A stretch of DNA of 64,000 bases, from NCBI RefSeq assembly GCF_006345805.1, contig NC_043005.1, positions 40,734,001-40,798,000 on the forward strand, given 5' to 3'. Below, piece after piece: positions 2,394 to 56,639 of the stretch. This DNA comes from Octopus sinensis (Eukaryota). How positions within the stretch are numbered: the first letter of the stretch is position 1; each line of letters starts with the position of its first letter. A model generated the notes under the pieces. It saw only the letters and a program-made list of their open reading frames with translations, was not told where the DNA came from and made no database searches. A program made the position numbers and the translations under genes.

Positions 2394-3506
2394 TTGGGTC
2401 ATCCCATAAATAATGTGATATTTTCAATTGCATGAACTAAAAGTCGTAGGGGGATGGTATAAACTGCCTGCATCAACTTGCTATAAAAGCAGGTAGTAAT
2501 TTTACCTTGTACTTATTCTTTGTGCAAGTTTTGAAAAGTGCTGCTTGATTTTTAAGTTATTTTTTCAAAGCTATAATGGAAATGACAAAGGTGCATATTC
2601 AGCATATTTTGCTTTATGAGTTCAATAAAGGCAACAACACAATGGAAAGTGCGAAGAATATTAGTGCCGTATATGGGGATTGGACAATAAGTGTAAGCCA
2701 GTGTCAGTGGTGGTTCCAGAAATCCCAAGCTGGCAACTACAGCCTAGAAGATGAGCCTCATCTCGGAAGATCTGTAGAGCTCGATGAGGACATCCTGCAA
2801 ACCCTGGTGAAACAAAATCTTATTGTAACTATTGAGGAACTAGCAGAGAAGCTTGGATTTGGTCATTCAACCATTCATCGACACCTGCATGTAGTGGGTT
2901 CCTCACAAACTTTCTGAGTCTAATCGCGTGCTGAGAGTGAATGTGTGCTCTTCTTTGCTGTCATGTCATATGAATGAACCTTTTTTTGGACTAAAGGCAG
3001 AGGTAAGGAAAGGAGAAACATTGGCTCTCCAAGCTAAAGAAAGTCTTCACTCATGTAAGGCATTACCTGTTTGGTAATACCTTACATGCTGTGAGCAGCT
3101 TGGGCAGCTTCAGTCAACGCTAGAAGAAAAACAACTGTCTTTGGTTTCAAGACAAAAGGTGTTCTTCCATCAGGCCACATACAGCGAGGATGACATTCCA
3201 AAGGCTGGAACAATTTGAATGGGAAACAATGTCCTGCTCACCATATCGCTGGACACTGCCCCATCTGATTATCATTTATTCTGCAGTCTTCAAAATCATT
3301 TGGATGGAAAAAAATAGGAATTCTGTAGACGAGATGAGAAGAGTACTGGAGGAGTATTTTTCATCATGGACTGGTGAATCTTGGAGGAGGAGCCTTGTAA
3401 AAAATGAAGGAGAGTATATTTTAGATGAAAAAAGAACTTTGTTTATCTTAATTTTGAAAAATAAAAGAAGTATAAAAAAAATCGCATTATTTATGGGATG
3501 ACTCAA
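2394..3506 (+). mobile_element. decayed mariner transposon with both TIRs
   Basis: About 31-bp TIRs (ttgggtcatcccataaataatg / cattatttatgggatgactcaa) flanked by TA. ORF 2576-2917 is a mariner N-terminal HTH region; an APSDYHLF-like remnant lies near 3255-3280. Frameshifted and shortened. Confidence 0.9.
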
Positions 3507-4662: not shown

Positions 4663-4848
4663 ACTGGAGATACTTCAAAATCAGAGGGAATTGTAGAGTT
4701 GCTGGAAACCCTAAAGAAATACACTTATATACCAGAACGAAATCTTACTGGACCCTTTATTTTTTCTGTTGACCATTGCTTTTCAATTCGAGGACAAGGA
4801 ACTGTGATGACTGGTACAGTACTTAACGGCAGTGTCTCAATCAATGAG
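4663..4848 (+). CDS. EEFSEC: eEFSec coding exon (186 nt)
   Basis: cccatcag|ACT GGA...AAT GAG|gttagt. Encodes ...GPFIFSVDHCFSIRGQGTVMTGT..., the EF-Tu/SelB domain II signature. Confidence 0.95.
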
Positions 4849-5802
4849 GTTAGTACATAATATTTTTATCATGAGAAAGTCCTCACACGTTAGGAATTTG
4901 AGGAGTTGTTATTATATGGCTTGTGAAGTTATATTCATTATATCAATATAATATGTGTATTGTCTGTGTCTGAGGAAGTACATTTTACTGGAACATAATT
5001 TATCGAGTCTGGAGACCACTGAATCTTGCAACTGCATCAATTGTAAGTTGACATTATCTCCCTTATCCTTCTGAGCAGCATGTTTCTTTCTCTGTTGCTC
5101 TATCATGTGTATACAGGAAATAAAGTGGATATGGGTAACTGGAATAATTGCTGGAATAGTGTGGAATATTTATATGTTGCTTTTTCTGTGGTGGTGGGAA
5201 GTGTTTTGCAATATATGAAGATAAAATAAATGTAGTTATGTTGATGGTGGGTAGGAAATGAATGAAAACTTTTTGCAAGTGAAGAACTTAATTAGCACAT
5301 TTCATAGCTAGCTTTTAGAAAATATAGAGAGGGTAAATCTATTTGACCATATGTTTCTTTGTAGATGTTTCTTTTGATAATAATATAGCTAGGGTACAAT
5401 AATCATTTACACTTTGTTAACAGCAGTTGTAGCTTGAGCTGTAATTACTTACACCTTTTTACCATTCAAGATATACAACAGGAATACCTTAAACTACATT
5501 GTATACCCAACTTTCTTGGTGCCTTTTGATCTGGTGAATACCTCTAACCTCTGAAGTTCAAGAAATTGATTTATATTTGATAATATAATCATTTCTAGGA
5601 TTTTGTTAGTTATATTATATTTCAAATATTTTATTTTTGTTTCAGGTTTGCGTGTTATATGATGGGAATTGCAACCACTATGTTAAACCTTTGCTTTAAC
5701 TGAGGAAGGTTTATATGGTGGATGCAATTTCCTATTTTGTATTACACAAATCTGAAACATACTTATTGAATGATTTTCAAAATATCACTATTTGGTTTGA
5801 CT

Positions 5803-6115
5803 TGGCATGTAAAAAGCACCATCCGAATCGTGGCCGAAGCCAGTGCCGCCTCGACTGGCTTCCGTGCAGGTGGCACGTAAAATGCACCAATCAGACCGTG
5901 GCCGATGCCAGCTTCGCCTGGCACCAGTGCAGGTGGCACGTAAAAAGCACCCACTACACTCACGGAGTGGTTGGCGTTAGGAAGGGCATCCAGCTGTAGA
6001 AACATTGCCAGATAAGACCGGAGCCTGGTGCAGCCTTCTGGCTTCCCAGATCCCCGGTCGAACCGTCCAACCCATGCTAGCATGGAGAACGGACGTTAAA
6101 CGTTGATGATGATGA
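5803..6115 (+). mobile_element. short RTE-tail element with internal tandem units
   Basis: GGCACGTAAAAAGCACC-type units, then GGCGTTAGGAAGGGCATCCAGCTGTAG, the CCATGCTAGCATGG palindrome and a (GAT)n tail. Confidence 0.8.
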
Positions 6116-6357: not shown

Positions 6358-6788
6358 TCATCATCATCATCATCGTTTAGCGTCCGTTTTCCATGCTAGC
6401 ATGGGTTGGACGGGTCAACTGGGGTCTGTGAAGCTGGAAGGCTTCGTCAGGCCCAGTCAGATCTGGCAGTGTTTCTACGGCTGGATGCCCTTCCTAACGC
6501 CAACCACTCCGCGAGTGTAGTGGGTGTTTTTTACGTGCCACCTGCACAGGTGCCAGACAGAGCTGGCGAACGGCCACGAACGGATGGTGCTTTTATGTGT
6601 CACCGGCACGGGGCCAGGCGATGCTGGCAACGGACACGAACGGATGGTGCTTTTACGTGCCACCGACATGGGGCCAGACAGAGCTGGCAACCGGCCACGA
6701 ACGGACGGTGCTTTTACATGTCACCGGCACGGGGATCAGCCGAGGCTGGCAACAGACGCGAACGGATGGTGCTTTTTACGTGCCACCC
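6358..6788 (-). mobile_element. short RTE-tail element with tandem units (inverted relative to 5803-6115)
   Basis: (CAT)n, then the reverse complement of the same tail, then several ~60-bp units. Confidence 0.8.
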
Positions 6789-6998
6789 TAATAATATTTG
6801 ATTATAAAATCATGAGATTTTCTTTTAAGCATCAATCTTGTATGGGTGTCCAGTAGAGTAAAACAAGAATCAAAGGGGTCCACAGGCAAAAAATGGTTGA
6901 GAACCACTGCCCTAGAGTAAGACGCTTGTTACTGTCCCTCTCTCAGACTTTAATTGTTCATCTCCTGGCATTAAACCACTAACCTCACTTCTCTATGT

Positions 6999-7250: not shown

Positions 7251-8260
7251 TTTTGCCCTCACAACCCTCAGTTGAGGAGTCTTGTCTTGTGAGTTACTTG
7301 GTGACCTCATTGGTGCTGGTGCCATATAAAAAGCACCCAATACACTGTAAAGTGGTTGGCATTAGGAAGGACACCCAACCCTAGAAACGATATCAAAGTA
7401 GATAAAGGAGTTTGTTTCAATCCTCTGACTCACAAGCTCCTCTCAAATCTTCCAGCCCTTACCTGCATGCAAAACAGACATTAAATGGTGATGGTTATAA
7501 TTGTGGGACCCTCAATGTTGCAATACATTTTGAAGTGACAAAGTTATTTCAGTTTGAACTAACTTGATCTTTGAATCTTCAGTGGAGTACTTAGTCATTA
7601 GCTCTGTTTCCTTGGGCAAATTTGGTTGAGTAATTTGCATTACATTTGTAACAGAATTCTATGTTGATAACGGTGAGACTTAATGATTTGTGCAAGATAT
7701 TCCATTCAGAAATGAAAGACTAGTCTCCATGTCCTCCACAATAAAGAAATTCATATCCATATCATGCTTAGCTGTTAAATGCAGATATGCCCTGATACTG
7801 GCTACATTTGTGATTTCTGTAGTGCCTTTATTGTGTATTTCTCATATTTAGACAAAACGCTGCAGTTGGCTGTATCTCTAAAGTAATATGTAAAATGTAT
7901 GCAGAGACTGCACACAAACAAACATGCACACCATCAGGTTTATTTTATTACTACTTGTATCAGTTTAATTTTGTGTACTGTAGTTTATTTCACTTACTAT
8001 CTTCCTCCTTTTTTGCAAATAGGGTGCCTATACCAGAAGAATCATGTATATATCAACATGCATTGGTCCAAAAAACCAGACATTGTAAATGTGTTCTGTT
8101 TATTTAGATCACCTTTGATAGAGAGTAAAAATAAAATAGAAAAGCTTAGACTATAAATATATGCAACAGCTGATATGATGATCTAAATGCATCTACTTTC
8201 ATCTTGAGGAATTGAATATCTAATTCTATGTTTGCAATCTTCCTATTTGTATATTTTCAG

Positions 8261-8344
8261 ACCATTGAAATCCCATCTCTGAAAGTGACCAAGAATGTTA
8301 AATCTATGCAAATGTTTCGTTTACCTGTTGAGAAAGTTGTTCAG
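8261..8344 (+). CDS. EEFSEC: eEFSec coding exon (84 nt, phase 0-0)
   Basis: attttcag|ACC ATT...GTT CAG|gtcagt. Encodes TIEIPSLKVTKNVKSMQMFRLPVEKVVQ, similar to human SVEIPALKVVKKVKSMQMFHMP. Confidence 0.94.
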
Positions 8345-8677
8345 GTCAGTGAAGAATAAATGTATCTATGTTATTTAATCCTCATTGAGTACACCTATAA
8401 TGAAAGGCATTCACACTCAACAATCTCACCATCTTTTTGTATGTCTAATATGTTCTTTAAGATGTTTGTGTCACATCTCTCCCATGTTTCTCACTGTAAG
8501 GGTTTATGTCATAGTAATTCCTTGGTTGTTCCAAACTGATCAGTTTCTACTTCCACATTTTGTTTAATTGGAATTTTCATTCTTTTTCCATTTTCTTTGC
8601 TTCATTTTTCTTCCTTTTTATCTTTGTCAACGGAATTCACTGTTTTATACACACAAAACACACACACTATATATATA

Positions 8678-8719
<42 letters not shown>

Positions 8720-8720
8720 T

Positions 8721-9165
8721 GTGCCGTTTGCCAGCCTCATAAAAACACCATCGAGCGTGGCCGTCTGCCAGCCTCGTTCTGGCACCTGTGTCGGTGGCAC
8801 ATAAAAAACACCATCCGAGCGTGGCCGTCTGCCAGCCTCGTCTGGCACCTGTGTCGGTGGCACATAAAAAACACCATCCGAGCGTGGCCGTCTGCCAGCC
8901 TCGTCTGGCACCTGTGTCGGTGGCACATAAAAAACACCATCCGAGCGTGGCCGTTTGCCAGCCTCGTCTGGCACCTGTGTCGGTGGCACATAAAATCACC
9001 CACTACACTCTCGGAGTGGTTGGCGTTAGGAAGGCATCCAGCTGTAGAACACTGCCAGATCTGACTGGACTGGTGCAGCTTTCGGGCTCCCCAGACCCCA
9101 GTTGAACCGTCCAACCCATGCTAGATGGAAAGCGGACGTTAATTGATGATGATGATGATGATGAT
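8721..9165 (+). mobile_element. young RTE-tail element with a 63-bp VNTR
   Basis: Near-identical 63-bp units start at 8781, 8844 and 8907, and a fourth (8970) runs into the shared tail and (GAT)n. Confidence 0.85.
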
Positions 9166-9341
9166 ATTGAAATGTATGAAAAGCCAAGGGCTTTATGGAT
9201 GCAAAACCCTGGGTAACCCAATGAACCAGCCATAACTCTTTCTCTAAATATATATATATATTCAACTTTTTTGTTATTTCCTTGTTAAGTTTTCTTACCA
9301 CTTTTGCTTTCTTAGTTATTCCCCCACCCCACTCTTGTCCA

Positions 9342-9463
9342 ACCAATGATGACTAAACTCTGCGCAAATATGAAGTATGTCCTTCAAGTGTGTCTGGCTC
9401 CAATGATAATCCTTTGTTGAGCCAACAGCTTGAACATACACTGTTTTAAGAGTGTTCTGAGGT
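9342..9463 (+). ncRNA. intronic box C/D snoRNA/scaRNA-like RNA, copy 1
   Basis: Box C ATGATGA at 9346-9352, box D CTGA at 9457-9460, terminal acc/ggt stem and a putative D' ATGA. Has an internal hairpin; 40 nt are identical to copy 2. Confidence 0.75.
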
Positions 9464-10498
9464 AATATGCTAATCCTATCAATATTAATAAGTTTTTAAA
9501 AAAATGTTAAATGTTACACTGAAGCCACAATGGATTTTGCCACAATTGTCATGATTTTTAGTTAGCAACTTCAGAAGAAATATAAGGAATGACATCAGGA
9601 CTGTTTGTGAAACTGTTAAAGGTATTGAACATTGTATACAGAGAACGTGCTGAGTGTTCAACAATGGTTATTCACTCAAATTTAGGAAACTTTGTTAGAT
9701 CATGAAAAAGATGATAGCCCAAGTTGTTTTTGGAGGGTAGCCATCTGGGCCTTTTGGGCTCATGTTGACAACTGCACTGTTTAATACCTTCCTCATCTGT
9801 GCGACCATGCTGCTGTACATATGATGGAAATGGAGGTGACTCGAAGTGAACCTTTTCAACGTCAGAGAAATGCAAGGTACCAACAAGTTAACAACTGAAT
9901 AGTTCATTGAACTACATTAGTCTGATGATAGTGTTTTCAGTGTTCACACTTCAGAAGCACTATAAGCCACCATAGCAACCATTACATTTTATGGAAAAAA
10001 TGGGCCTGATAGTTAACTTCCACAAGCAGACCATTTGTGAATGGTACACTGTATCCCCCCAACACACCTGCTTATTCACTTTCTCAATACAACAGCAAGA
10101 AGCTATATCTTCCTTTCTAATTCCCATACTTGAACATTATCATTTCTAGTGAATGCTTAACTACTATCTACTGGACAGTCTGTATTTCCACTCTTCTGTC
10201 TAGGTGTTAGTCATGGACTTCATACAGCTGATACATTGAAACAGTGGAAATCTTTTACATCCAATGTCTGTTGAAGATCTTTTTACTCACCTGTTTAAAA
10301 AAAGAATTATGTACATGCAAATCTAACACCAGCAGCATTGAATCCACCCTAAATCATCTTCTATAATCAACTGTCTCTTCTACTTATTCAACTGAATTGT
10401 GCAATTTGTTTTTCTAATTTACTCTTTCAATCACTTTCTTTCCTTTGGAAGTTTTCTTACCTCTTTGCCTCTCTTAGTTTTTTTCCCCTCTTATTGCA

Positions 10499-10606
10499 AC
10501 CAATGATGACTAAACTCTGCGCAAATATGAAGTATGCTCATCAACTATGTCTGGCTTCAATGAGCCAACAGCTGGGGCATACAGTGTCTTGAGAGTGCTC
10601 TGAGGT
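10499..10606 (+). ncRNA. intronic box C/D snoRNA/scaRNA-like RNA, copy 2
   Basis: Box C ATGATGA at 10503-10509, box D CTGA at 10600-10603, terminal acc/ggt stem. Same guide segment as copy 1, and a hairpin with a compensatory change relative to it. Confidence 0.75.
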
Positions 10607-11089
10607 AATGCTGCAACATATTCCCTATACTTTTACCAAAGGAGATACAATGCTATTATTTCTTAGTGAGCCTATTAGAAAAGATAATAGTTCTGGTTTA
10701 TCTTTTCAGTATTTTGTATTGCAGCACAATATCAAGTGTGTATTTGTGTGTGTGATAAGTGAATGAACAATTTTCCACTACTACTCTTGTTCTTTAAATC
10801 AAATTTCTCTGTTAAAAATTGTATTGTAAATAGTTGTTTACTCAAATATATTTTCTTTCTTTTTACATTTCCTCATTAATTGGTTCTGACCAGTTTGCAG
10901 CAGTATTGTCACAAAAACAAATTGACTCTAGTAAAGTTGAGTCAGTTTTTTGTTTTTTTTATATTTTTGAAGAGAATCAAGATGTTGTTAGAGAGAAGCA
11001 TGTATTGAATGATATTAATGCATTTACCCTCATGGGTTCCACAATGGAAATGAGATGTTCATTGAAGAGAACATGCAAAAAGATCAAGG

Positions 11090-11253
11090 TCCAATCTGAT
11101 CTGGCAGAGTTTCTACAGCTGTATGCCCTTCCTAATGCCAACCACTCTGAGAGTGTAGTGGGTGCTTATACATGCCACTGGCACGAGGGCCAGTCAGGCG
11201 GTACTGGCAATGGCCACGCTCAAATGGTGTTTTTTATGTGCCACCTGCACAGG
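11090..11253 (-). mobile_element. fragment of the same RTE-tail family
   Basis: ctacagctgtatgcccttcctaatgccaaccactctgagagtgtagtgggtgc, the reverse complement of the family core. Confidence 0.75.
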
Positions 11254-11688
11254 AGATAATTTTGTTAATTAGCTAACCTAACCTAATTAACTGGCAGTGA
11301 GTGTTCTGAAAGCATAGTTGCAAGAATAAAAACTGAGTGGAAAATGTGTTTAGAGTTATTCTGCTGCAAAAATTAAAAAGTACAAATGATCCCTCTAGGT
11401 TAGCAGTAATTCCCAATAACAACTGACTCAGACTCTGGTGACTCACCCAACCTTTGACAGCATGGAAAAGCAGATTTAAAATGATGATGATGGCAATGGA
11501 AAGTATTAAGAAATAGTTAAAAGGCTAAAATCCTGTTATCTTTAATTTATTCCTCTCTTGATCTGACTTTGTAAGCTTATTGCTGCTGCCTAAGACCATG
11601 GAAATTTTAGCTGTAATAAGCAATTAATGTTTTGTAACTCTTGAAATTTTGTATTGCCTATATTTTAATATTTCATCTTATTTTGTAG

Positions 11689-12373
11689 GGTGACCGGGCT
11701 GGTATTTGTGTGACACAGTTTGATCCTAAACAGCTTGAGCGTGGCCTTGTGTGTTCTCCAGGTTCCCTACCTACTATTTATGCTGGAATAATCTTTGTAA
11801 AGAAGATCCCTTACTACAAAGGAACTGTATCCACTAATGCCAAGTTCCATATAACAATGGGTCATGAAACTATCATGGCCCATGTCACATTTTTTGGCAC
11901 TGAAAGTGCTTCTGAACAAGATAATACTTTAGATCTTTCAAAAGAATATAATTACCAAGAAGAATTATTAGAAAAGCAACCTCAACAGCCTAATCTCTGC
12001 CAATATGCTCTCTTGGAATTTGAAAAGCCCATTACTTGTTTGGCATCCTGTCTAGTGATTGGCTCCAAACTTGACAGTGATATCAATGCCAATGTGTGCC
12101 GGATTGCATTCCATGGACAACTATTAACTTATTACACTGACTCAAAGTACAAAGAGAGTAAACTATCAGAACTGAAGATATTTAAAATCAAGTCCAGGGA
12201 AGGTAGGATCGAACGAGTTACTGATGCTCATTCACTAATTGGCAAGGATTTATTCAAGAAAGAAACAAATATACAAGCCTTTGCCAACCTCAAAGTAACA
12301 TTATCAAGTGGCGAGAATGGAATTATTGAGGGCAGTTTTGGTCAAAGTGGCAAAGTAAAAATCCGTATTCCAA
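11689..12373 (+). CDS. EEFSEC: eEFSec coding exon (685 nt)
   Basis: ttttgtag|GGT GAC CGG...CCA A|gtaagt. Encodes GDRAGICVTQFDPKQLERG...KFHITMGHET...LFKKETNIQ...FGQSGKVKIRIP; largely coincides with ORF 11710-12381. Confidence 0.96.
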
Positions 12374-13332
12374 GTAAGTAAACCTTTTTTTCTTAAATAT
12401 ATTCTTTACAATGACAGCTTCATATTTCCAAATATCACCAACACATTTCTTAAGACTAATTAAGGACAAAGGAATTGTTTATACCATTTTTCTAAAATTA
12501 TTGAACAGATAAAGATAAAATGGTTGAGAGTACAAAGCAAATAGTGAAAGGCAACTAGTCTGAGGGATTTATATTATTTTACTGTCAGCTCTACTGTCTT
12601 TAAAAATATGGCTACTTGTATTTTTAATGTACTGTACAATTTAGTAGATATAACACAAGGGCTAAGCTCAGCATTCATTTATTGAGATTTAAGCACCAAA
12701 GTATATCTCACTTTTATTGAATTATCTTCTTTCTCTTCTACTTATGTTATTATTTCACTGTAATTAAGGGAGGAGTGAGTCAGTAGTTTATCAAGGGGAG
12801 CTACAGTGCCAACTCTGCGATACTAGCCCCAATTCCTGAATTAAGAAACTGTCAGTCAATTCATCTTGGCCATCATTGTTTGATGTAAAATATTATCATT
12901 TAATTTTTGTCTTCCCCATACATGCAAGTTGCTGTTCTTCATTGACCCCTTCCCATGCTTTCCTCTGCTACAGGGTCCTTCCAGATGGCACTCCTTTATC
13001 TAATTATCATCCTTCACATTATCACATCTCCATACTCATGTAGAATTATTTCTTTTACATTATAGTTGATTCAAATTAACAAAATTCTGGATATAACAGA
13101 ATTGAAGAAGGGAAAGAGTAATGCTAAAGGTTCATTTAAGATGGTGCAAAAACTCTGAAACAAAATATCATTATTTACAAATCACTTTAGCAAAAGGAAT
13201 GGTAATTCAGGCAATATCTTTTTATATTTCCCCCAGTATATTACTGGTATTGCCATCACATGAATGAAAAGTAAAATCATAATTAAAATTTCAAATCAGT
13301 TTCTCATCTAAGTTTTTTTGTTTTTGAAGATA

Positions 13333-13935
13333 AATCAAAATCAAAATCAAATCAAATCAAAACAAATCAAAATAGATGAACATCTTGTGAAGACCTGTTG
13401 AGGCAAGTGAAAATCAAAATCAAATCAAATCAAATCAAAACAAATCAAAATAGATGAACATCAATGGAATTTGTATCTTTGTGGTACCAGTGCCGGTGGC
13501 ATACAAGAAAACCATCCGAACGTAGCCGTAGCCAGTACCGCATCGACTGGCCTCCATGCTGTGGGCACGTAACAAACACCATCCGATCGTGGCCGTTCGC
13601 CAGCCTCATCTGGCACCTGTGTCGGTGGCACATAAAAACACCATCCGAGCGTGGCCGTCTGCCAGCCTCGTCTGGCACCTGTGTCGGTGGCACATAAAAA
13701 AAAACACCATCCGAGCGTGGCCGTTCGCTAGCCTTGTCTGGCACCTGTGTCGGTGGCACAAAATCACCCACTACACTCTCGGAGTGGTTGGCGTTAGGAA
13801 GGGCATCCAGCTGTAGAAACACTGCCAGATCTGACTGGCCTGGTGCAGCCTTCGGGCTCCCCAGACCCCAGTTGAACCGTCCAGCCCATGCTAGCATGGA
13901 AAGCGGACGTTAAATGATGATGATGATGATGATGA
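13333..13935 (+). mobile_element. young RTE-tail element with (AAATC)n head and ~63-bp units
   Basis: Duplicated AAATC-rich block at 13333-13462, then units nearly identical to 8781-8990, then the shared tail. Confidence 0.85.
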
Positions 13936-16830: not shown

Positions 16831-17612
16831 GTATGTGTGCTAGTTTATCATCTTATCCTATGTTTGTGTCGACAACTAGAATTAATCATTTGGTTGCACA
16901 GAAATAGCAATAAGTCTATAAAAAAAGTATCTGGCTCCTCAATACATGAATTAAAAGTATATATATATATATGAGTTATTATATACATATATATAATAGT
17001 ATATATGAATCATGATTTGTCTTTAAAAGAATTTCTGAATTTTAACATGAAGAGAGAAAATGCTGATTTGGCAACCAAAAAAGATTGTGATGTCAAATTT
17101 TTTATTAATTCTAGATATTTATGGATGTAGAATTAATCTGATTTATAGAACTTGCCTACTTCTTACCAGTCAGAAGCTAAATGAAATCTAACTTTTTGTA
17201 GTCCTTTGGGTGTCTTCAAACAAATTATTTTGAAGTCACACAAATACATGCACAGTACCTAGATATATTGTAACCTTTTGGTTGTGGCCATGCTGGGGCA
17301 CTGCCATTGATTGATGGGTGGCTCCCATATAGTCAACCCACCTAAGTATTAACAAGGCTCAATGTTACATAACTTCAATGATCAGAGAAAAATCAGTGTT
17401 TTCTTTGTGAAGAGATCAATTACTGTGTAACAAGCTTTCTTTTATTTTCATAGTCTAAAAAGTACCTTTATCTTGACATTTTGCTCTCACCTGGATGATG
17501 CTCTATAAAATGACCTCAGTAATCACTTCAGACATTTAGTTGATTTGTTTTCTTTTATATATGTATGTGTATGTGTATATACATATATTTATTTGTTTAC
17601 ATATTATTGCAG

Positions 17613-17773
17613 ATGGTTTGAGTGAGGAAGTCCTTCAGAGATATTCCGGTTCAAAGAAGAAGGGAAAAACTGCTGAGGCTGCTTCACCTGGAGCAGATCA
17701 AGAACCAGTGAAGATCATTTTATCATTTAAACGATATATTTTTGATCCAAAGAAAAAAATGATACAGTCATGA
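17613..17773 (+). CDS. EEFSEC: eEFSec terminal coding exon
   Basis: attgcag|AT GGT TTG... ends LSFKRYIFDPKKKMIQS-TGA, similar to human LTFKRYVFDTHKRMVQSP. The phase-1 junction with the previous exon is in frame. Confidence 0.95.
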
Positions 17774-28683: not shown

Positions 28684-28760
28684 TCAGAGTATAAAAAATA
28701 GAGCTATGATAATCACCATTATAACTATCAACACAACAATTGCACACCATTGGCGTCGGT
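28684..28760 (-). CDS. STX6: syntaxin 6 terminal coding exon (transmembrane anchor)
   Basis: ctttcag|AC CGA CGC CAA TGG...CTC TGA TGA. Encodes [25 protein letters not shown], similar to human [25 protein letters not shown]. Confidence 0.95.
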
Positions 28761-29224
28761 CTGAAAGTAAAATAAAGAAAAAATAATGAGTAAATAAATT
28801 CAAGCATTATGTACAAGGAATAAGGAAGAAAAGCTAATAGTGATGTATGAGAGAATAAGTTATTGAATCTATTCATAGATCCTGTGAACAAATTCATATG
28901 AAGCATATCATTTGCTTTTGAAACAGGACATTTTCTTCTATATCACCTTAGTTCATTTTAGCTATCGTAAACTAATACCACAAAGGATCATAAAATTGAT
29001 TTTATCACCCCAGTGAAATAAATGAAATACCCTTAATTTAATTCTCAGATATTGTGATACAGTCAAGAGCAACGTACGTCAGTCGATGCTGCATAAATAA
29101 TTCCACTTTAAATTACATCTCTAATCCACTACAATGGCTCCCCATTGATCCAATCATGATAAATACATCTGTTGCAAGTAATTTCACTGATCATTCACAT
29201 GGTAAAAAATCATGTTCATCAAAT

Positions 29225-30570
29225 GCACATCACTAAATCATCATCATCATCATTTAAGATCCATTCTCCATGCTGGCATGGGTTGCATGGATTAACAGGA
29301 GCTGGTCAGCTAGGGAGCTGTTTGGGCTTCATTTGTCAGTTTTGGCACGGTTTCTACAGCTGGATGCCCTTCCTAACATCAACCATTTTACAGAATGTAC
29401 TGGGTGCTTTAAATGTGGTGCTGGCAGAGGCATTTACATGTCATGGGTGCTTTTATGTGGCACCAGCACCCATGACTTCACAAGACTTGATATGTCGTCT
29501 CAAGCACAGCAAACTGCTATCTGTCATCTTTTCTGTGAGGCCCAATGTCTGAAGATCCTTTCGTATCACTTTGTCCTATGTCTTCCTAAGTCTACCCCTT
29601 CCACACATTTCATCCACAGAGATTGCCACTTGATAACCATACCAGTGCAGTCTTCTATTTTGCACACTACATCTTATGCCTCATATACCCAATTTTTCTC
29701 TCAAATCACACTGCTGTGCATGCACACTGACACTCCCATCCAGCAGATCATGCTGGCTTCATTTCTTTCAAGCCTTTGCATGGCCTCAGTAGTTACAGCC
29801 CATGTCTCATTGCCATGTAGCATAGTTATTTGTACACAAGCATCATACAATCAGCGTTTCACTCTGAGACAGAGGCCCTTTGTTATGAACAAAGGAAGTA
29901 GCTCTCTGAATTTTGACCAGCCCATTCATATTCTAGCAGCTATACTTTCAGAACTATCTCCTCCATTACTAACTTGGTTGCCTAGGTAATGGAAACTATC
30001 TACTACTTCTAAGGATCCACCTGGACATTTGTGAGAGTCTATTTTCTGTACATTCCTGGTGTTTAATGTACCTGCACATCTGCCACATACAATGACTACT
30101 TTCTCTGTTAACCTTCCTGTGATACTGTTGCACCTTCTAGGTGTCAAACAGCTTGCATTGGGTCAACTGTATGGAGTTTCTACCAACACCTTTTCTACAT
30201 ATCAAGTAGGCTCATCTCCTTGGAGGGATCTGTGATTTGTCCATTTTCCTTCTTACTGGGACTTTGGCATTTGCTAAATTAACTCTATGGCCCTTTGATT
30301 CCTGACCTTGCTTCTACACCTGGATTCTGCAATAAGAACAAGGTCATCAGTGTAGAGGAGCTCCCAAGGGCAGACTACCTTAAATTCCTCTGTTATGGTC
30401 TGGAGACTATGATAAACAAGAGGGTACTGAGAACCAATCTTTTGTAACCTCCTGTCTGTACACTAAATTCCTTGCTATACTCATTGCCAACTTTCACCTT
30501 ACTGACAGCATCCCTAAATTCATTGTCACACCTGACAGACACAGTAATGATGCTAGGGGTCAGAATCATT
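29225..30570 (-). mobile_element. 5'-truncated RTE-clade LINE with (GAT)n tail
   Basis: Decayed RT C-terminal region (VCPWELLYTDDLVLI; KCPGGSLEVVDSFHYLG) followed by the shared tail ending in a TGA/GAT microsatellite at about 29237. Confidence 0.85.
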
Positions 30571-48799: not shown

Positions 48800-49883
48800 G
48801 CCAATGTCATGTTCTCGAATACCTGCAGTAAAAAGGTTTAGCCCCCTAGGACATTCATGCTAACATGGTTGCTACATTAGGGGATGACATTCCAGCTTTA
48901 TCAACAATGTAAAAGTAGGCAATTGAATTTAGGAGGGGAAGAAAGACTCTTGAAGGTGACCCAAGGTCAGGATATCATGCAACTGCCACTACTGAGGAAA
49001 CCATTGATCATGTTCACCACATGATGGCTGACAGACTATCAATCAAATAGCCAATACTATTAGCATATCCTGTGAGAGAGTTAAGAATATTCTGCACAGC
49101 AATCTTGGCATGATGAAGGTTTCTGCTTGGTGGGTGTCATGTTGTCATGTTGACACCTGATCAAAAGTGCACAAGACTGCTCACATCACAGCAGAATCTG
49201 ACATTATCTGAGGCAGATATAGCTGGCTTCCTAACCCAGGATGTTTGTTGGATTCATCACTTTGAGCCAGATGAAAAGACAAAGAGACAATCCATGCAGT
49301 GGAAACACCCCTCTTCACCTGTTCCAAAGAAGGCCATGGTCGTTTCATCTGCAGGGAAGGTGATGGCCTCAGTTTTTTGGAATGTAAAAGGCTTTGTGTT
49401 TATTGACTATTTTCAAAAGGGCCACATCATCAATGGAGAGTACTATGCCAACTTGCTGAGGCACTTATAAAGGCTATTAAGACCAAGTGCCCAGGAAAAC
49501 TGATGAAAGGGGTCTTGTTTCATGAGGACAATGCTCCAGCACAGAAGTTTTTGGTTTCAATGGATGGTGTGTGTGACTGTGGCTTTGAACTGGTTGCTTA
49601 AGCTCCCTATTCTCATGATTTGGCTCCACCTGACTATCATCTGTTCCAGAACGTGAAAAATAAAACTTGGTTGAGAAGCAGTATTGCAATGATAATGATG
49701 TCATATATGCTGATGATGACTTTTTTGACCAACAAGATGAAAACTTCTTCACCAATGGGATCCAAGCACTGCAACACTAATGTAAGAAGTGTGTGAACTG
49801 CAAGGAGGACTATGCTGAAAGCTAAACCACATTTGCTCACATTCCACGAGCGTCTTGGTCAAACTATGTACTTTTCAGCTGAC
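48800..49883 (+). mobile_element. decayed mariner transposase (irritans/Himar-like)
   Basis: Fragments include RLLT, QDVCWIHHFEP, KKAMVVSSAGKVMASVFW, INGEYYANLL, HEDNAPA and SHDLAPPDYHLF; stops and frameshifts throughout. Confidence 0.9.
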
Positions 49884-52840: not shown

Positions 52841-53896
52841 AAACAAGGCTACAAATCTACCTCCATGATCTTACTCTCTACACCTGTCTCTGACCAACTA
52901 CCACATTTCCACATTTGTTTCCTCCCCTAATAACTTCTGGCAAATGAAAGTCTTTGAAAACCAAGTGTCAGTTCAAAACACCTCAAAAATATTCTTCAGC
53001 TCCATTTTATACTACCAAACTAAAAACTGGTTTCTTGTGGGAATGTTATCAAATCTGAACTTCACAAACAGAACAGATGAAAACAAACAATTGAAAAAGA
53101 AACATAGTGACTAAATCTACTGAACAGAAACACCCAAAAATTGAGAATATGATATAGATCTGGTAAACTACCATATAATAACTGTATCACCATTATCATT
53201 AACTCATTGAGAAACATGCTCCTTCATTTGAGACACACATATATTACTTTCCTCTTGAAATTTTTCCCCAGCAGTTGACTTCAAGTCATTCTCAAGAAAC
53301 ATTTGAACATATTTTTGTTGAGCTTCATCAGAATCTCCAAAAATTTGTAATTTCACATCAGTTGTCGACATTCTATGTCTTCTTTCGTAAACAACTGTGT
53401 CAGAAGTATGTAGCTGCAGCAAGCTTCATGAGTGAAAAAAAAAATGGAAATGAAGAAAAATATTCAAAACAACACTTTAAATAGTGCTGTCTGTTAGCAG
53501 ACATTTGTAAATAGCCTAAGAGTAGCCAACCTATTTTTAGTTTGACTGAATTTTTAGCAATGGATTTGACATTCCTACTATATAGGAGGTCTGAAATTAG
53601 TCGTAAAACCTGATATATTCTTAAATATACTCTACTAGCATTTTTACAAGTCTATGTGAGAGTATAAATGAGACACATTGTTGTATGTGTGTAACAGATG
53701 CTTCTAATGATGGATGATACTCTTCAGGGATTCCAAGTCAACCATTTGCATTTGTTACAATGAGAATGGCCTTTTGTCATAGTCTTTCTAACCAAACCAT
53801 ACAACTGGTTGATAACCTTTTAAGTAGTTTGTATATTGTTTTTGGTAATGCACATTAGAAAGAAATCAGTAGTTTACTTCAGTGTAAAAGTGAATG

Positions 53897-53930
<34 letters not shown>

Positions 53931-56639
53931 AGCCAATGTTTTGGTAAATTATAACCTTTCCTCATCGTCTTATCATCGTCATGGTTTTGTTCTCTTCTAT
54001 GTCATTAATATTCTTTCTGAAAATAAGCACATCATCTATGTATTTGCTTAATATGGATTTTGTTATTTATGGTACAGATAACAAGCTGTTTTTATTGTTT
54101 GAGATTTTCATATCTCTAAACTGCAATACTCCAGTACTCATCATGACATGGAATGATATCACTGGAATTCCTTCTGGATAAATAATATATAATCAAGTGT
54201 GGGCTAATGTAATGTAGTGAGCCAAAGCACGTTTTAACTATTAATATTTCATGCACTAGGCAGAATCATTAGCATGCTGGGTAAAATGCTTAGTTGCATT
54301 TCATCCGTCTTTATGCTCTGAATTAAAATTCCGCTGAGATCAACTTTGCCTTTCATCCTTTTAGGCACTCATAAAATAAGTACCAGTTGAGCAAAGGGTT
54401 CAATGTAATCAACTTACCCCTTGCCCTAAAATTGCTGACCTTGTGCCAAAGTTTGAAATGAATATTTCACCTACCTACCAACTTAAGAGAAAACTCATTA
54501 ACTTCTTGTCGAGAAAGACAATGAAAATAACTGACATTCCAAATGTTCCAAATTTAATGAAGAATGGGTATGTAATAGGGAGTAAATCTAATCTTTTGGC
54601 AAGAGCTCCTTAGTGAAGCACAGTCTTACACATACTTAGATCTTAGAATAATTGAGATACTTCATAACTGAGTAGTTAACAACTTGCACAATCTGCTTCA
54701 AATGACAAAGGGTGTGTTGAATAATGTTGTTCTAGATACATTTGTTTCTGAACATAACATAGTCACAGCTGGAATACCATTGATCATTGCTACTTGGGCT
54801 AATGGAGCAATGCAAGGGGCAGATTTCCTCTCCACTTTATGCTCCCCCATTCAATTTTCAGTTACTTTGAATTTCTGAATTGTCTTCCTTGACTTTCTTG
54901 GCAAGAAACCAAGGATTTTTCTCTTCATTAGTTAGAAAAGTAGCTGTACTATTAAGAGTTTAAGCATTTGTTGATTCAGTATGTTAAATAAAAAATATGC
55001 TTAACTATATATTTATTATGCAGAAGACATTCCTGTGAAATGTTCTCATATCATGACAGTATTGTCAGTTTAGAGATATGAAAATATCAGAAGATAAAAG
55101 ATAGCTCTGTATTTATACCATAAATAACAAAACTCACATTAAATATATCCATAGTATTTACTTTAGATAAGAGTAAAGGCATGAGTACAATAGACTTGAC
55201 ATGAATAGAAGAAGAGTACAAAACTATGAGGACGATAAGGAGGTGACATTAGGTTATAATTTACCAAAACAGTGACCATGTCAGTCCAGTAATCTGTGTG
55301 TGTGAGTGTGTGTGTGTGTATGTGTGTGTGCATGCATGCGCAAACATACTTCAAGTCACTTTTGCACTCAAACAACCAAATAATTTCTTTCTAATGTGCA
55401 TAGTTAAAAAAAAATTCAAACTATTAGTTATCAACCAGTTATGTGACCTGGTGAGATAAGCTATAACAAAGGCCATCCACATCATAATAAATCACATAAT
55501 TTTCAGTGAACCAAATCAAAAGAAGTATTGCTTAGGAGCACAATATGATACTTTTATTAAGACTTTGAACTCATATACTTGAGGTATATTGCCCATCCTC
55601 CTTAGTTTAAAGTATCTTTTATTTATTTCAGTCATTAAAATTTGGCCATGTTGGGGCACCACCTTTTAGAATTTTAGTTAAATGAACTGAACCGAGTACT
55701 TTTTTTTTAAGCCTGGTACATATTCTATCAGCCTCTTATGCCAAACTGCTAAATTACAGGGACATAATCACATCAACACCCATTGACAAGTGGTGGTGTG
55801 GAACAAACACAGACAGACAAACAAATAGACACACGCACATATGATGAGCTTCTTTCTGTTTCCATTGACCAAATCCACTCTCAAGGCTTTAGTCGGTCCA
55901 AGGTTATAGTAGAAATTTTAAAGGTACATAGTTTCAAAGATTCAATAACAAATATGCAGTCATGAAAGAAGCCCCATTTTTTATGTTAATAGAGAAAAGT
56001 ATAGGGATCTGTGTCAGTAAGAGTTAACCATTTGTATATCTACCTACAGGTGTGTATGTGTGTGTGCACGTGCATGCATGCCACTTCAGAGTCAGTATGG
56101 TATGGCTTCAGTGCCATTGTGGGTGTTGCTGTCACAATGGTAAGTGCTGAGACAAATAAGACAAAACATCTCATTCAAGGCTCAAACAGTTCCAACAGTC
56201 CACCCCCACCTCATCTAGATTGGTACTTTTTACCCATCCCTGCAAAGTTGAAAAACAAAGTCAGTCTTGGTGGGATTTGAACTGAGAGTATAGTGCATCA
56301 AAACAGATACGACAAAGCATTCTATCCAACACTTTAACACAATTCGGTCAATTTGCTGCCTCCGTATTAAAGTAAATATCAAATAAACAAACCAGATGAC
56401 ATTTTATCAGTAACTTGACATCTTACTTTACACATGTCACACAGCTGTTGCATTCTGACTTATGTCTGTCAAATGGTTGCATTTCACACAGTCTTGCAAT
56501 ATGTAACTCACATTCCATAACTTGCTGTAGATTACTGCATGCAATATACTCTGTCAACCAATACTTATGCAGCACATACTTTATAGCACAAGGTCCTTAT
56601 CCTGTGCCATAAAGTATATACTGCATACTTGTGCTATAA

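Follow-up and report, generated by a model that had tools for sequence, protein, structure and literature searches.

The 5′ end of human U4 small nuclear RNA (snRNA) carries Cm8, whose guide is scaRNA17 (mgU12-22/U4-8; MBII-119); the modifications known in human U4 are Am1, Gm2, Cm8 and Am65, and Gm7 is not among them (PMC7960923). Human SCARNA17 is transcribed independently by RNA polymerase II (Pol II) and capped; it has a tandem pair of C/D domains and lacks GU repeats (PMC4041459). Its 3′ C/D domain (SCARNA17/U91, with mouse MBII-119) corresponds to Rfam family RF00283, whose consensus guide CCACUGCGCA-AUCUGA (CCACUGCGCAAU followed by CUGA) is the complement of U4 nucleotides 5–15 and places C8 opposite guide position 5. 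Rfam 15 labels this family ‘SCARNA18’, yet its consensus is that of a C/D RNA with a U4 guide; the label is misleading, because SCARNA18 in the HGNC nomenclature is U109, an H/ACA RNA (PMC1687206).

Vertebrate U90 (SCARNA7) and mgU2-47 are intronic guides for the modification of Pol II snRNAs and have a long apical hairpin between D′ and C′; they contain a terminal G·U/U·G wobble stem with four to six or more UG repeats and bind WDR79 (PMC4041459). Among protostomes, Drosophila mgU4-65 is a C/D scaRNA that acts on U4 at a different site, A65, and the source that describes it gives no guide for the U4 5′ end in this organism (PMC3884663).

The sequences described here were found in a stretch of 64,000 nucleotides of Octopus sinensis DNA (the window), in which one intron of EEFSEC holds two copies of a box C/D-type RNA; a third sequence, present as a single copy, was found in L001, a 56-kb ENA contig that also encodes EEFSEC. 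The best Rfam match of all three is RF00283, with scores of 18.4, 16.9 and 16.0 bits. The gathering score is 40, so all three fall far short of it; most of each score comes from the boxes and the guide, a result compatible with homology and convergence alike. The likeness to the U4 Cm8 domain of U91/SCARNA17, which a preliminary description had pointed out, is real in this sense: the family ranks first, though below threshold, for each sequence. An Rfam scan of the window at the gathering threshold returned no RF00283 match, and the family is also absent from the whole-window list at E ≤ 1, so the scores lack significance at the scale of the window. In the cmscan alignment, the guide of the window and L001 RNAs consists of the RF00283 core with one inserted A (CUGCGCAaAU).

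The members of RF00283, like the window RNAs, have a single functional guide before D′. Both share the guide core CUGCGCAA, which is complementary to the part of the U4 5′ end engaged in U4/U6 stem II, and the predicted duplex is about 11 bp in each; the 16–17 nucleotides before the D box are also partly alike (GUGuuCUgAGAACgGA in RF00283 versus GUGUCUUGAGAGUGCU in copy 2). By contrast, the internal hairpin measures 50–75 nucleotides in the window and L001 RNAs versus about 21 in RF00283, and, unlike SCARNA17, these RNAs are single-domain, lie in sense orientation in EEFSEC introns and lack the U12-22 domain, with both window copies being of the U4 type. The window RNAs probably correspond, in cephalopods, to the vertebrate guide for U4 methylation, with a shift of one base.

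With U90 and mgU2-47, the window RNAs share the intronic location, the modification of a Pol II snRNA as their predicted role, and the long apical hairpin between D′ and, in the window RNAs, a putative C′ box. However, the octopus hairpins are mostly Watson–Crick paired, with GUGUGU in one arm only, and no run of at least four UG repeats forming a wobble stem was found in the octopus copies; the L001 hairpin has GU-rich arms without a clear wobble stem. The motif TGAGCC is invariant in the three otherwise divergent hairpins (at ~11667–11672 in L001) and may represent a degenerate form of the C′ box or, alternatively, a CAB-like motif (ugAG). Drosophila mgU4-65 acts on U4, the predicted target of the window RNAs, whereas its site and its guide are different ones (PMC3884663). 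The window RNAs would be scaRNAs by function because their predicted target is a Pol II snRNA, and it is from this target that the name is taken.

Anatomy and setting of the intronic RNAs

The 17-mer CTAAACTCTGCGCAAAT occurs twice in the 64-kb window, on the plus strand in both cases; these remain the only two matches when up to two mismatches are allowed, and the number expected by chance is 0 (100 dinucleotide-preserving shuffles). In both copies it is adjoined by AATGATGA on its 5′ side and by ATGA on its 3′ side (Table 1), which confirms the two copies of guide and ATGA that had been reported, found here at 9353–9373 and 10510–10530. The 15-nucleotide guide core AAACTCTGCGCAAAT is invariant in copy 1, copy 2 and the L001 ortholog, and all three have the boxes that define the class, RUGAUGA towards the 5′ end and CUGA towards the 3′ end; the C box of L001 is the same as in the window, and its D′ box is canonical.

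Table 1. Features of the two window copies, their host intron and the L001 ortholog. Positions refer to the window, except for the last row, which is numbered along the L001 contig.
Feature	Position	Strand	Remarks
Host intron of EEFSEC	8345–11688	+	Between exons ~8258–8344 and ~11689–12381 (tblastn exon map)
Predicted box C/D RNA, copy 1, ~122 nt	9342–9463	+	Ends are the stem ACC (9342–9344)/GGT (9461–9463)
C box ATGATGA, copy 1	9346–9352	+	Same in copy 2 and L001
Putative D′ guide CTAAACTCTGCGCAAAT, copy 1	9353–9369	+	
D′ box ATGA, copy 1	9370–9373	+	CTGA in the L001 ortholog
Internal hairpin, copy 1	9375–9439	+	Base GTATGT/ACATAC; holds C′-like AATGATAA and TGAGCC at 9418–9423; from the predicted fold
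D box CTGA, copy 1	9457–9460	+	
Predicted box C/D RNA, copy 2, ~108 nt	10499–10606	+	
C box ATGATGA, copy 2	10503–10509	+	
Putative D′ guide, copy 2	10510–10526	+	Same sequence as in copy 1
D′ box ATGA, copy 2	10527–10530	+	
Internal hairpin, copy 2	10532–10582	+	Base GTATGC/GCATAC; TGAGCC at 10561–10566
D box CTGA, copy 2	10600–10603	+	
L001 ortholog	11593–11730	+	TGGCC-A-ATGATGA-TAAAACTCTGCGCAAAT-CTGA-T-(hairpin)-17 nt-CTGA-GGCT

In both window copies the internal hairpin begins 1 nucleotide after D′ and ends 17 nucleotides before the D box, and the terminal stem comprises 3 bp (ACC/GGT). The L001 hairpin is unrelated in sequence but occupies the equal place, 1 nucleotide after D′ and 17 before D, and the L001 terminal stem (GGCC/GGCT) has G–C as its third pair where the window has A–U, a compensatory change. 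The two window copies are 1157 nucleotides apart and align from about 55 nucleotides upstream to 6 nucleotides downstream of the RNA, with the remaining intervening DNA being unrelated. They are identical over 40 nucleotides, from the C box through the first bases of the hairpin; at the hairpin base U–A in copy 1 is replaced in a compensatory manner by C–G in copy 2, and the hairpin apex of copy 2 shows a deletion of 14–15 nucleotides relative to copy 1. The copies diverge in the stretch that precedes the D box, so there is a single conserved guide, not two. No convincing C′ box common to copy 1, copy 2 and L001 was found; the candidates are, in the apex of the window hairpins, AATGATAA and AATGAGCC, in L001 the AATGATC that follows the hairpin, and the invariant TGAGCC.

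The folding energies do not stand out (z = −1.9, −0.2 and +0.1 for the three sequences), and the nhmmer match of a three-sequence profile to copy 1 (E = 1.9e-38) is a self-match. Animal introns with two snoRNAs are unusual, which weighs against the reading as guide RNAs. The window copies are very likely to be functional box C/D RNAs.

The EEFSEC exons located by tblastn (~4762–4848, 8258–8344, 11689–12381 and 17606–17770) are all on the plus strand, and both RNAs are therefore sense-oriented within their intron. The open reading frame at 11710–12381 (+) matches Pfam euk_SelB_III and eEFSec_4th, the third and fourth domains of the selenocysteine-specific elongation factor. Whereas the window RNAs lie, in two copies, in the second-to-last EEFSEC intron, the single L001 RNA lies in the last one: the host gene is kept across the lineages and the intron is not, the window intron and L001 10568–12430 being adjacent introns of the gene.

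Both window copies are preceded by a splice-site-like flank (9290–9315 and 10452–10478), a pyrimidine tract ending in TTCTTAG or TCTCTTAG about 25 nucleotides before the RNA and about 30 before the C box. On the downstream side, CTGAG/GTAAT runs on from the D box (9457–9466 and 10600–10609), and further motifs resembling 3′ splice sites are found some 45–85 nucleotides downstream of each copy, near 9548–9553 and 10650–10656. Cryptic exons might separate the two RNAs and so give each an intron of its own. The splice-like flanks of the window copies are absent from L001.

The EEFSEC protein encoded by L001 shares 67% amino-acid identity with that of the window, and in an EEFSEC tree L001 and a further sequence (L128) are sister to the window lineage, apart from bivalve-like and vertebrate sequences; we infer that L001 represents another cephalopod lineage. 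When the 20-kb L001 locus was compared with the 64-kb window by blastn, the matches outside exons were the segment from C box to D′, two short conserved segments and several low-complexity stretches, and the intron around the RNA is unalignable between the two. A 103-nucleotide block with 78% identity lies downstream of EEFSEC in both (window 28684–28786, L001 17831–17932); it probably belongs to the next gene as an exon, which points to conserved synteny.

The EEFSEC exon most similar to that of the window (95% identity) comes from three short Logan contigs (L002–L004); they end about 1.15 kb upstream of this exon, short of the RNA, and L128 and L129 likewise miss the relevant stretch of the intron. 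Pattern searches and nhmmer revealed no such RNA in the EEFSEC loci of four other invertebrate assemblies (L005/L006, L007 from Mytilus, and L008); an nhmmer match in L005/L006 (E = 0.012) lacks a C box and was rejected as chance. Exact-pattern scans of metagenome and viral contigs for the guide RNA also returned nothing.

Elsewhere in the window, a 63-nucleotide tandem repeat of about four copies with 99–100% identity occupies 8752–8995. It lies within an interspersed family, found for example at ~5763–6083, 6406–6856, 10834–11259, 13445–13897 and 29270–29400, that yields spurious open reading frames with the motif LQLDALPNANHSESVVG. Remnants of a Mariner/Mos1-type transposase are present at 2576–2917 (+) and 49147–49470 (+) (HTH_48, E = 1.9e-16; Transposase_1, E = 2.9e-17). 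An inverted-repeat hairpin at 56554–56639 (−) matches mir-15 weakly (28.9 bits; gathering score, 57.3) and is probably a chance or repeat match. An Rfam match to SCARNA7 at 53874–54010 proved to be a (GT)n repeat, and many Rfam miRNA matches in the window are TA/GT microsatellites; these were discarded.

Predicted pairing with U4 and register of the guide

Within the reverse complement of the guide lies TTTGCGCAG/UUUGCGCAG, identical to nucleotides 4–12 of human U4. The human U4 5′ end reads GCTTTGCGCAGTGG as printed in published papers, and the Rfam U4 consensus, which starts AUCuUUGcGCAgGGGc, is compatible with the match; the complementarity to nucleotides 4–12 proposed in the preliminary description thus applies to both. 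With human U4, the guide forms nine contiguous Watson–Crick pairs over this stretch, guide position 5 included. The guide base that faces U4 nucleotide 13 is U, so the duplex stops at 9 bp with human U13, whereas A13, which the preliminary description envisaged, or G13 would extend it to 11 bp (nucleotides 4–14); the Rfam U4 consensus has G13, which gives a G·U pair and 11 bp. The conserved core of 15 nucleotides exceeds the U4-pairable stretch, and the AAA at the 5′ end of the core would lie opposite G15, C16 and A17.

Eight human spliceosomal snRNAs, with sequences entered by hand, were scanned with the guide: the 5′ end of U4 alone gives a 9-bp match that covers D′+5, and the longest run in the others (U1, U2, U5, U6, U12, U4atac and U6atac) is at most 6 bp. 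Among 5000 shuffled guides, 1.4% reached 9 bp.

No U4 gene was found in the window or in the fetched loci, no cephalopod U4 sequence was found printed in the literature searched, and a U4 scan of viral contigs returned nothing. A U4 scan of GTDB gave one eukaryotic U4, with U at nucleotide 13, together with two bacterial chance matches. The eukaryotic U4 gene (L132, positions 808–940 on the minus strand of contig CBDCSF010000001.1; Rfam U4, 108.8 bits) lies on a 20-kb contig that is filed under a Paracoccaceae metagenome-assembled genome and is presumably eukaryotic contamination.

The fifth base upstream of D′ is C9365 in copy 1 and C10522 in copy 2, and guide position 5 faces U4 G7 in both copies and in L001, one base off the vertebrate Cm8. 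The offset is explained by the A that the octopus and L001 guides have in addition to the RF00283 core: through this insertion the duplex slides from U5–G15 to U4–G14, and the nucleotide at D′+5 moves from C8 to G7. A degenerate D′ box does not account for this offset, because the insertion occurs in both lineages and, in L001, stands beside a canonical CUGA. The one-base shift, too, had been part of the preliminary description, and the extra A before D′ in both lineages bears it out. We know of no organism in which U4 G7 is modified. U4 is rather likely to be the target of the guide.

The U6 strand of stem II, ...CCCUGCGCAAGGAUGA..., has the same sense as the guide, pairs with the same U4 nucleotides and has TGCGCAA in common with it. 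This likeness arises because guide and U6 share the U4 partner strand; no Rfam U6 match was found in the guide RNAs, nor anything else that is U6-like.

Proposed mechanism and competing readings

The following pathway is proposed. Each intronic RNA would be released by splicing and exonucleolytic trimming and would assemble with 15.5K/SNU13, NOP56, NOP58 and fibrillarin. Its guide of 15–17 nucleotides, located between the C and D′ boxes, would then pair with the 5′ end of U4, over a stretch (nucleotides 4–12, or to nucleotide 14 with A or G at position 13) that otherwise forms U4/U6 stem II. Fibrillarin would 2′-O-methylate the nucleotide of U4 opposite the fifth base of the guide upstream of D′, predicted to be G7, one base 5′ of the Cm8 that mgU12-22/U4-8 (SCARNA17/U91, MBII-119) makes in vertebrates. 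We consider it reasonably probable, judging from sequence comparison, that the window RNAs are conserved, intron-encoded C/D guides for 2′-O-methylation of the U4 5′ end with a one-base register shift and G7 as the predicted site. That G7 itself is the modified base is a more tentative proposition. Equally tentative is the wider scenario in which coleoids would methylate U4 G7 by means of the vertebrate C8 guide slid by one nucleotide, the register having been kept since the split between octopods and the L001 lineage while the guide RNA moved between adjacent EEFSEC introns.

The targets could instead lie outside the spliceosome. The invariant 15-nucleotide core is longer than the 9–11 nucleotides that can pair with U4, and a U4 match of 9 bp is short, as would be expected if the window RNAs were ordinary nucleolar C/D snoRNAs with rRNA, tRNA or another RNA as their true target and the U4 match were a coincidence. 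However, the guide matches a vertebrate family known to target the same U4 site, and no conserved rRNA site emerged from 119 metazoan-type rDNA loci. This set (484 kb) was collected by scanning metagenomes for a bilaterian 5.8S pattern and contains 18S markers in 29–77 loci, 28S markers in 12–74 and the full unit in 7. None of its sites with at least nine contiguous pairs (G·U allowed) covering position 5 is common to more than five loci, and under a looser rule (10 or more of 12 positions paired) none is common to more than four, whereas shuffled guides often did better (sites in 10–50 loci; median ~5–10 loci, up to 51). A better match to rRNA, which the preliminary description had named as grounds for abandoning the U4 assignment, was thus not found for the conserved rRNA of these 119 loci. 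It is unlikely that the conserved rRNA core holds the target, and the reading as ordinary snoRNAs is improbable as a whole.

Even with the U4 5′ end as the partner, the outcome of pairing might differ from methylation of G7. C8 is the only internal 2′-O-methyl site known at the 5′ end of U4 (PMC7960923), the degenerate C′ box may weaken catalysis directed by D′, and the guide corresponds in sense to the U6 strand of stem II; these points would suit either methylation of C8, through a loose ruler or a double site, or a non-catalytic role in which the RNA mimics U6 and acts as a chaperone of the stem II strand. Such an outcome is nevertheless unlikely: the extra A is kept in both lineages and the canonical CTGA of L001 makes the register clear. 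The fifth-nucleotide rule is, moreover, very regular among box C/D guides.

It is very improbable that there is no functional RNA gene at all and that the copies are a duplicated minus-strand exon, fragments of a transposon or a decaying pair of snoRNA pseudogenes. On the minus strand, copy 1 has an open frame of about 46 codons, splice-site-like flanks accompany both window copies (TTCTTAG and GAG/GTAAT), and interspersed repeats are abundant in the region. Yet the indel of 14–15 nucleotides between the copies breaks the minus-strand frame, so that the conserved stretch would fall in different frames, and a minus-strand coding exon at copy 1 was rejected on this ground; L001, furthermore, has no splice-like flanks. 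Conservation is highest at the C box, the guide and the D′ box, the stems change in a compensatory way, and the element has been kept at a distance of 67% protein identity at which the surrounding intron is unalignable.

Implications for snRNA modification

The U4-type guide pair is not a new kind of system. In the literature searched, guides for snRNA modification are described almost only for vertebrates, Drosophila and yeasts; a U4 5′-end guide in a mollusc, if the assignment is true, would widen the range known for this modification to well outside the vertebrates. The analysis also places two previously unannotated non-coding genes in an EEFSEC intron. Methylation of U4 G7, if true, would exemplify, in nature, a modification site that has drifted along an snRNA helix with the guide–target duplex preserved, and the one-base shift would offer a simple test of whether the exact nucleotide of U4/U6 stem II matters or merely the presence of a 2′-O-methyl group.
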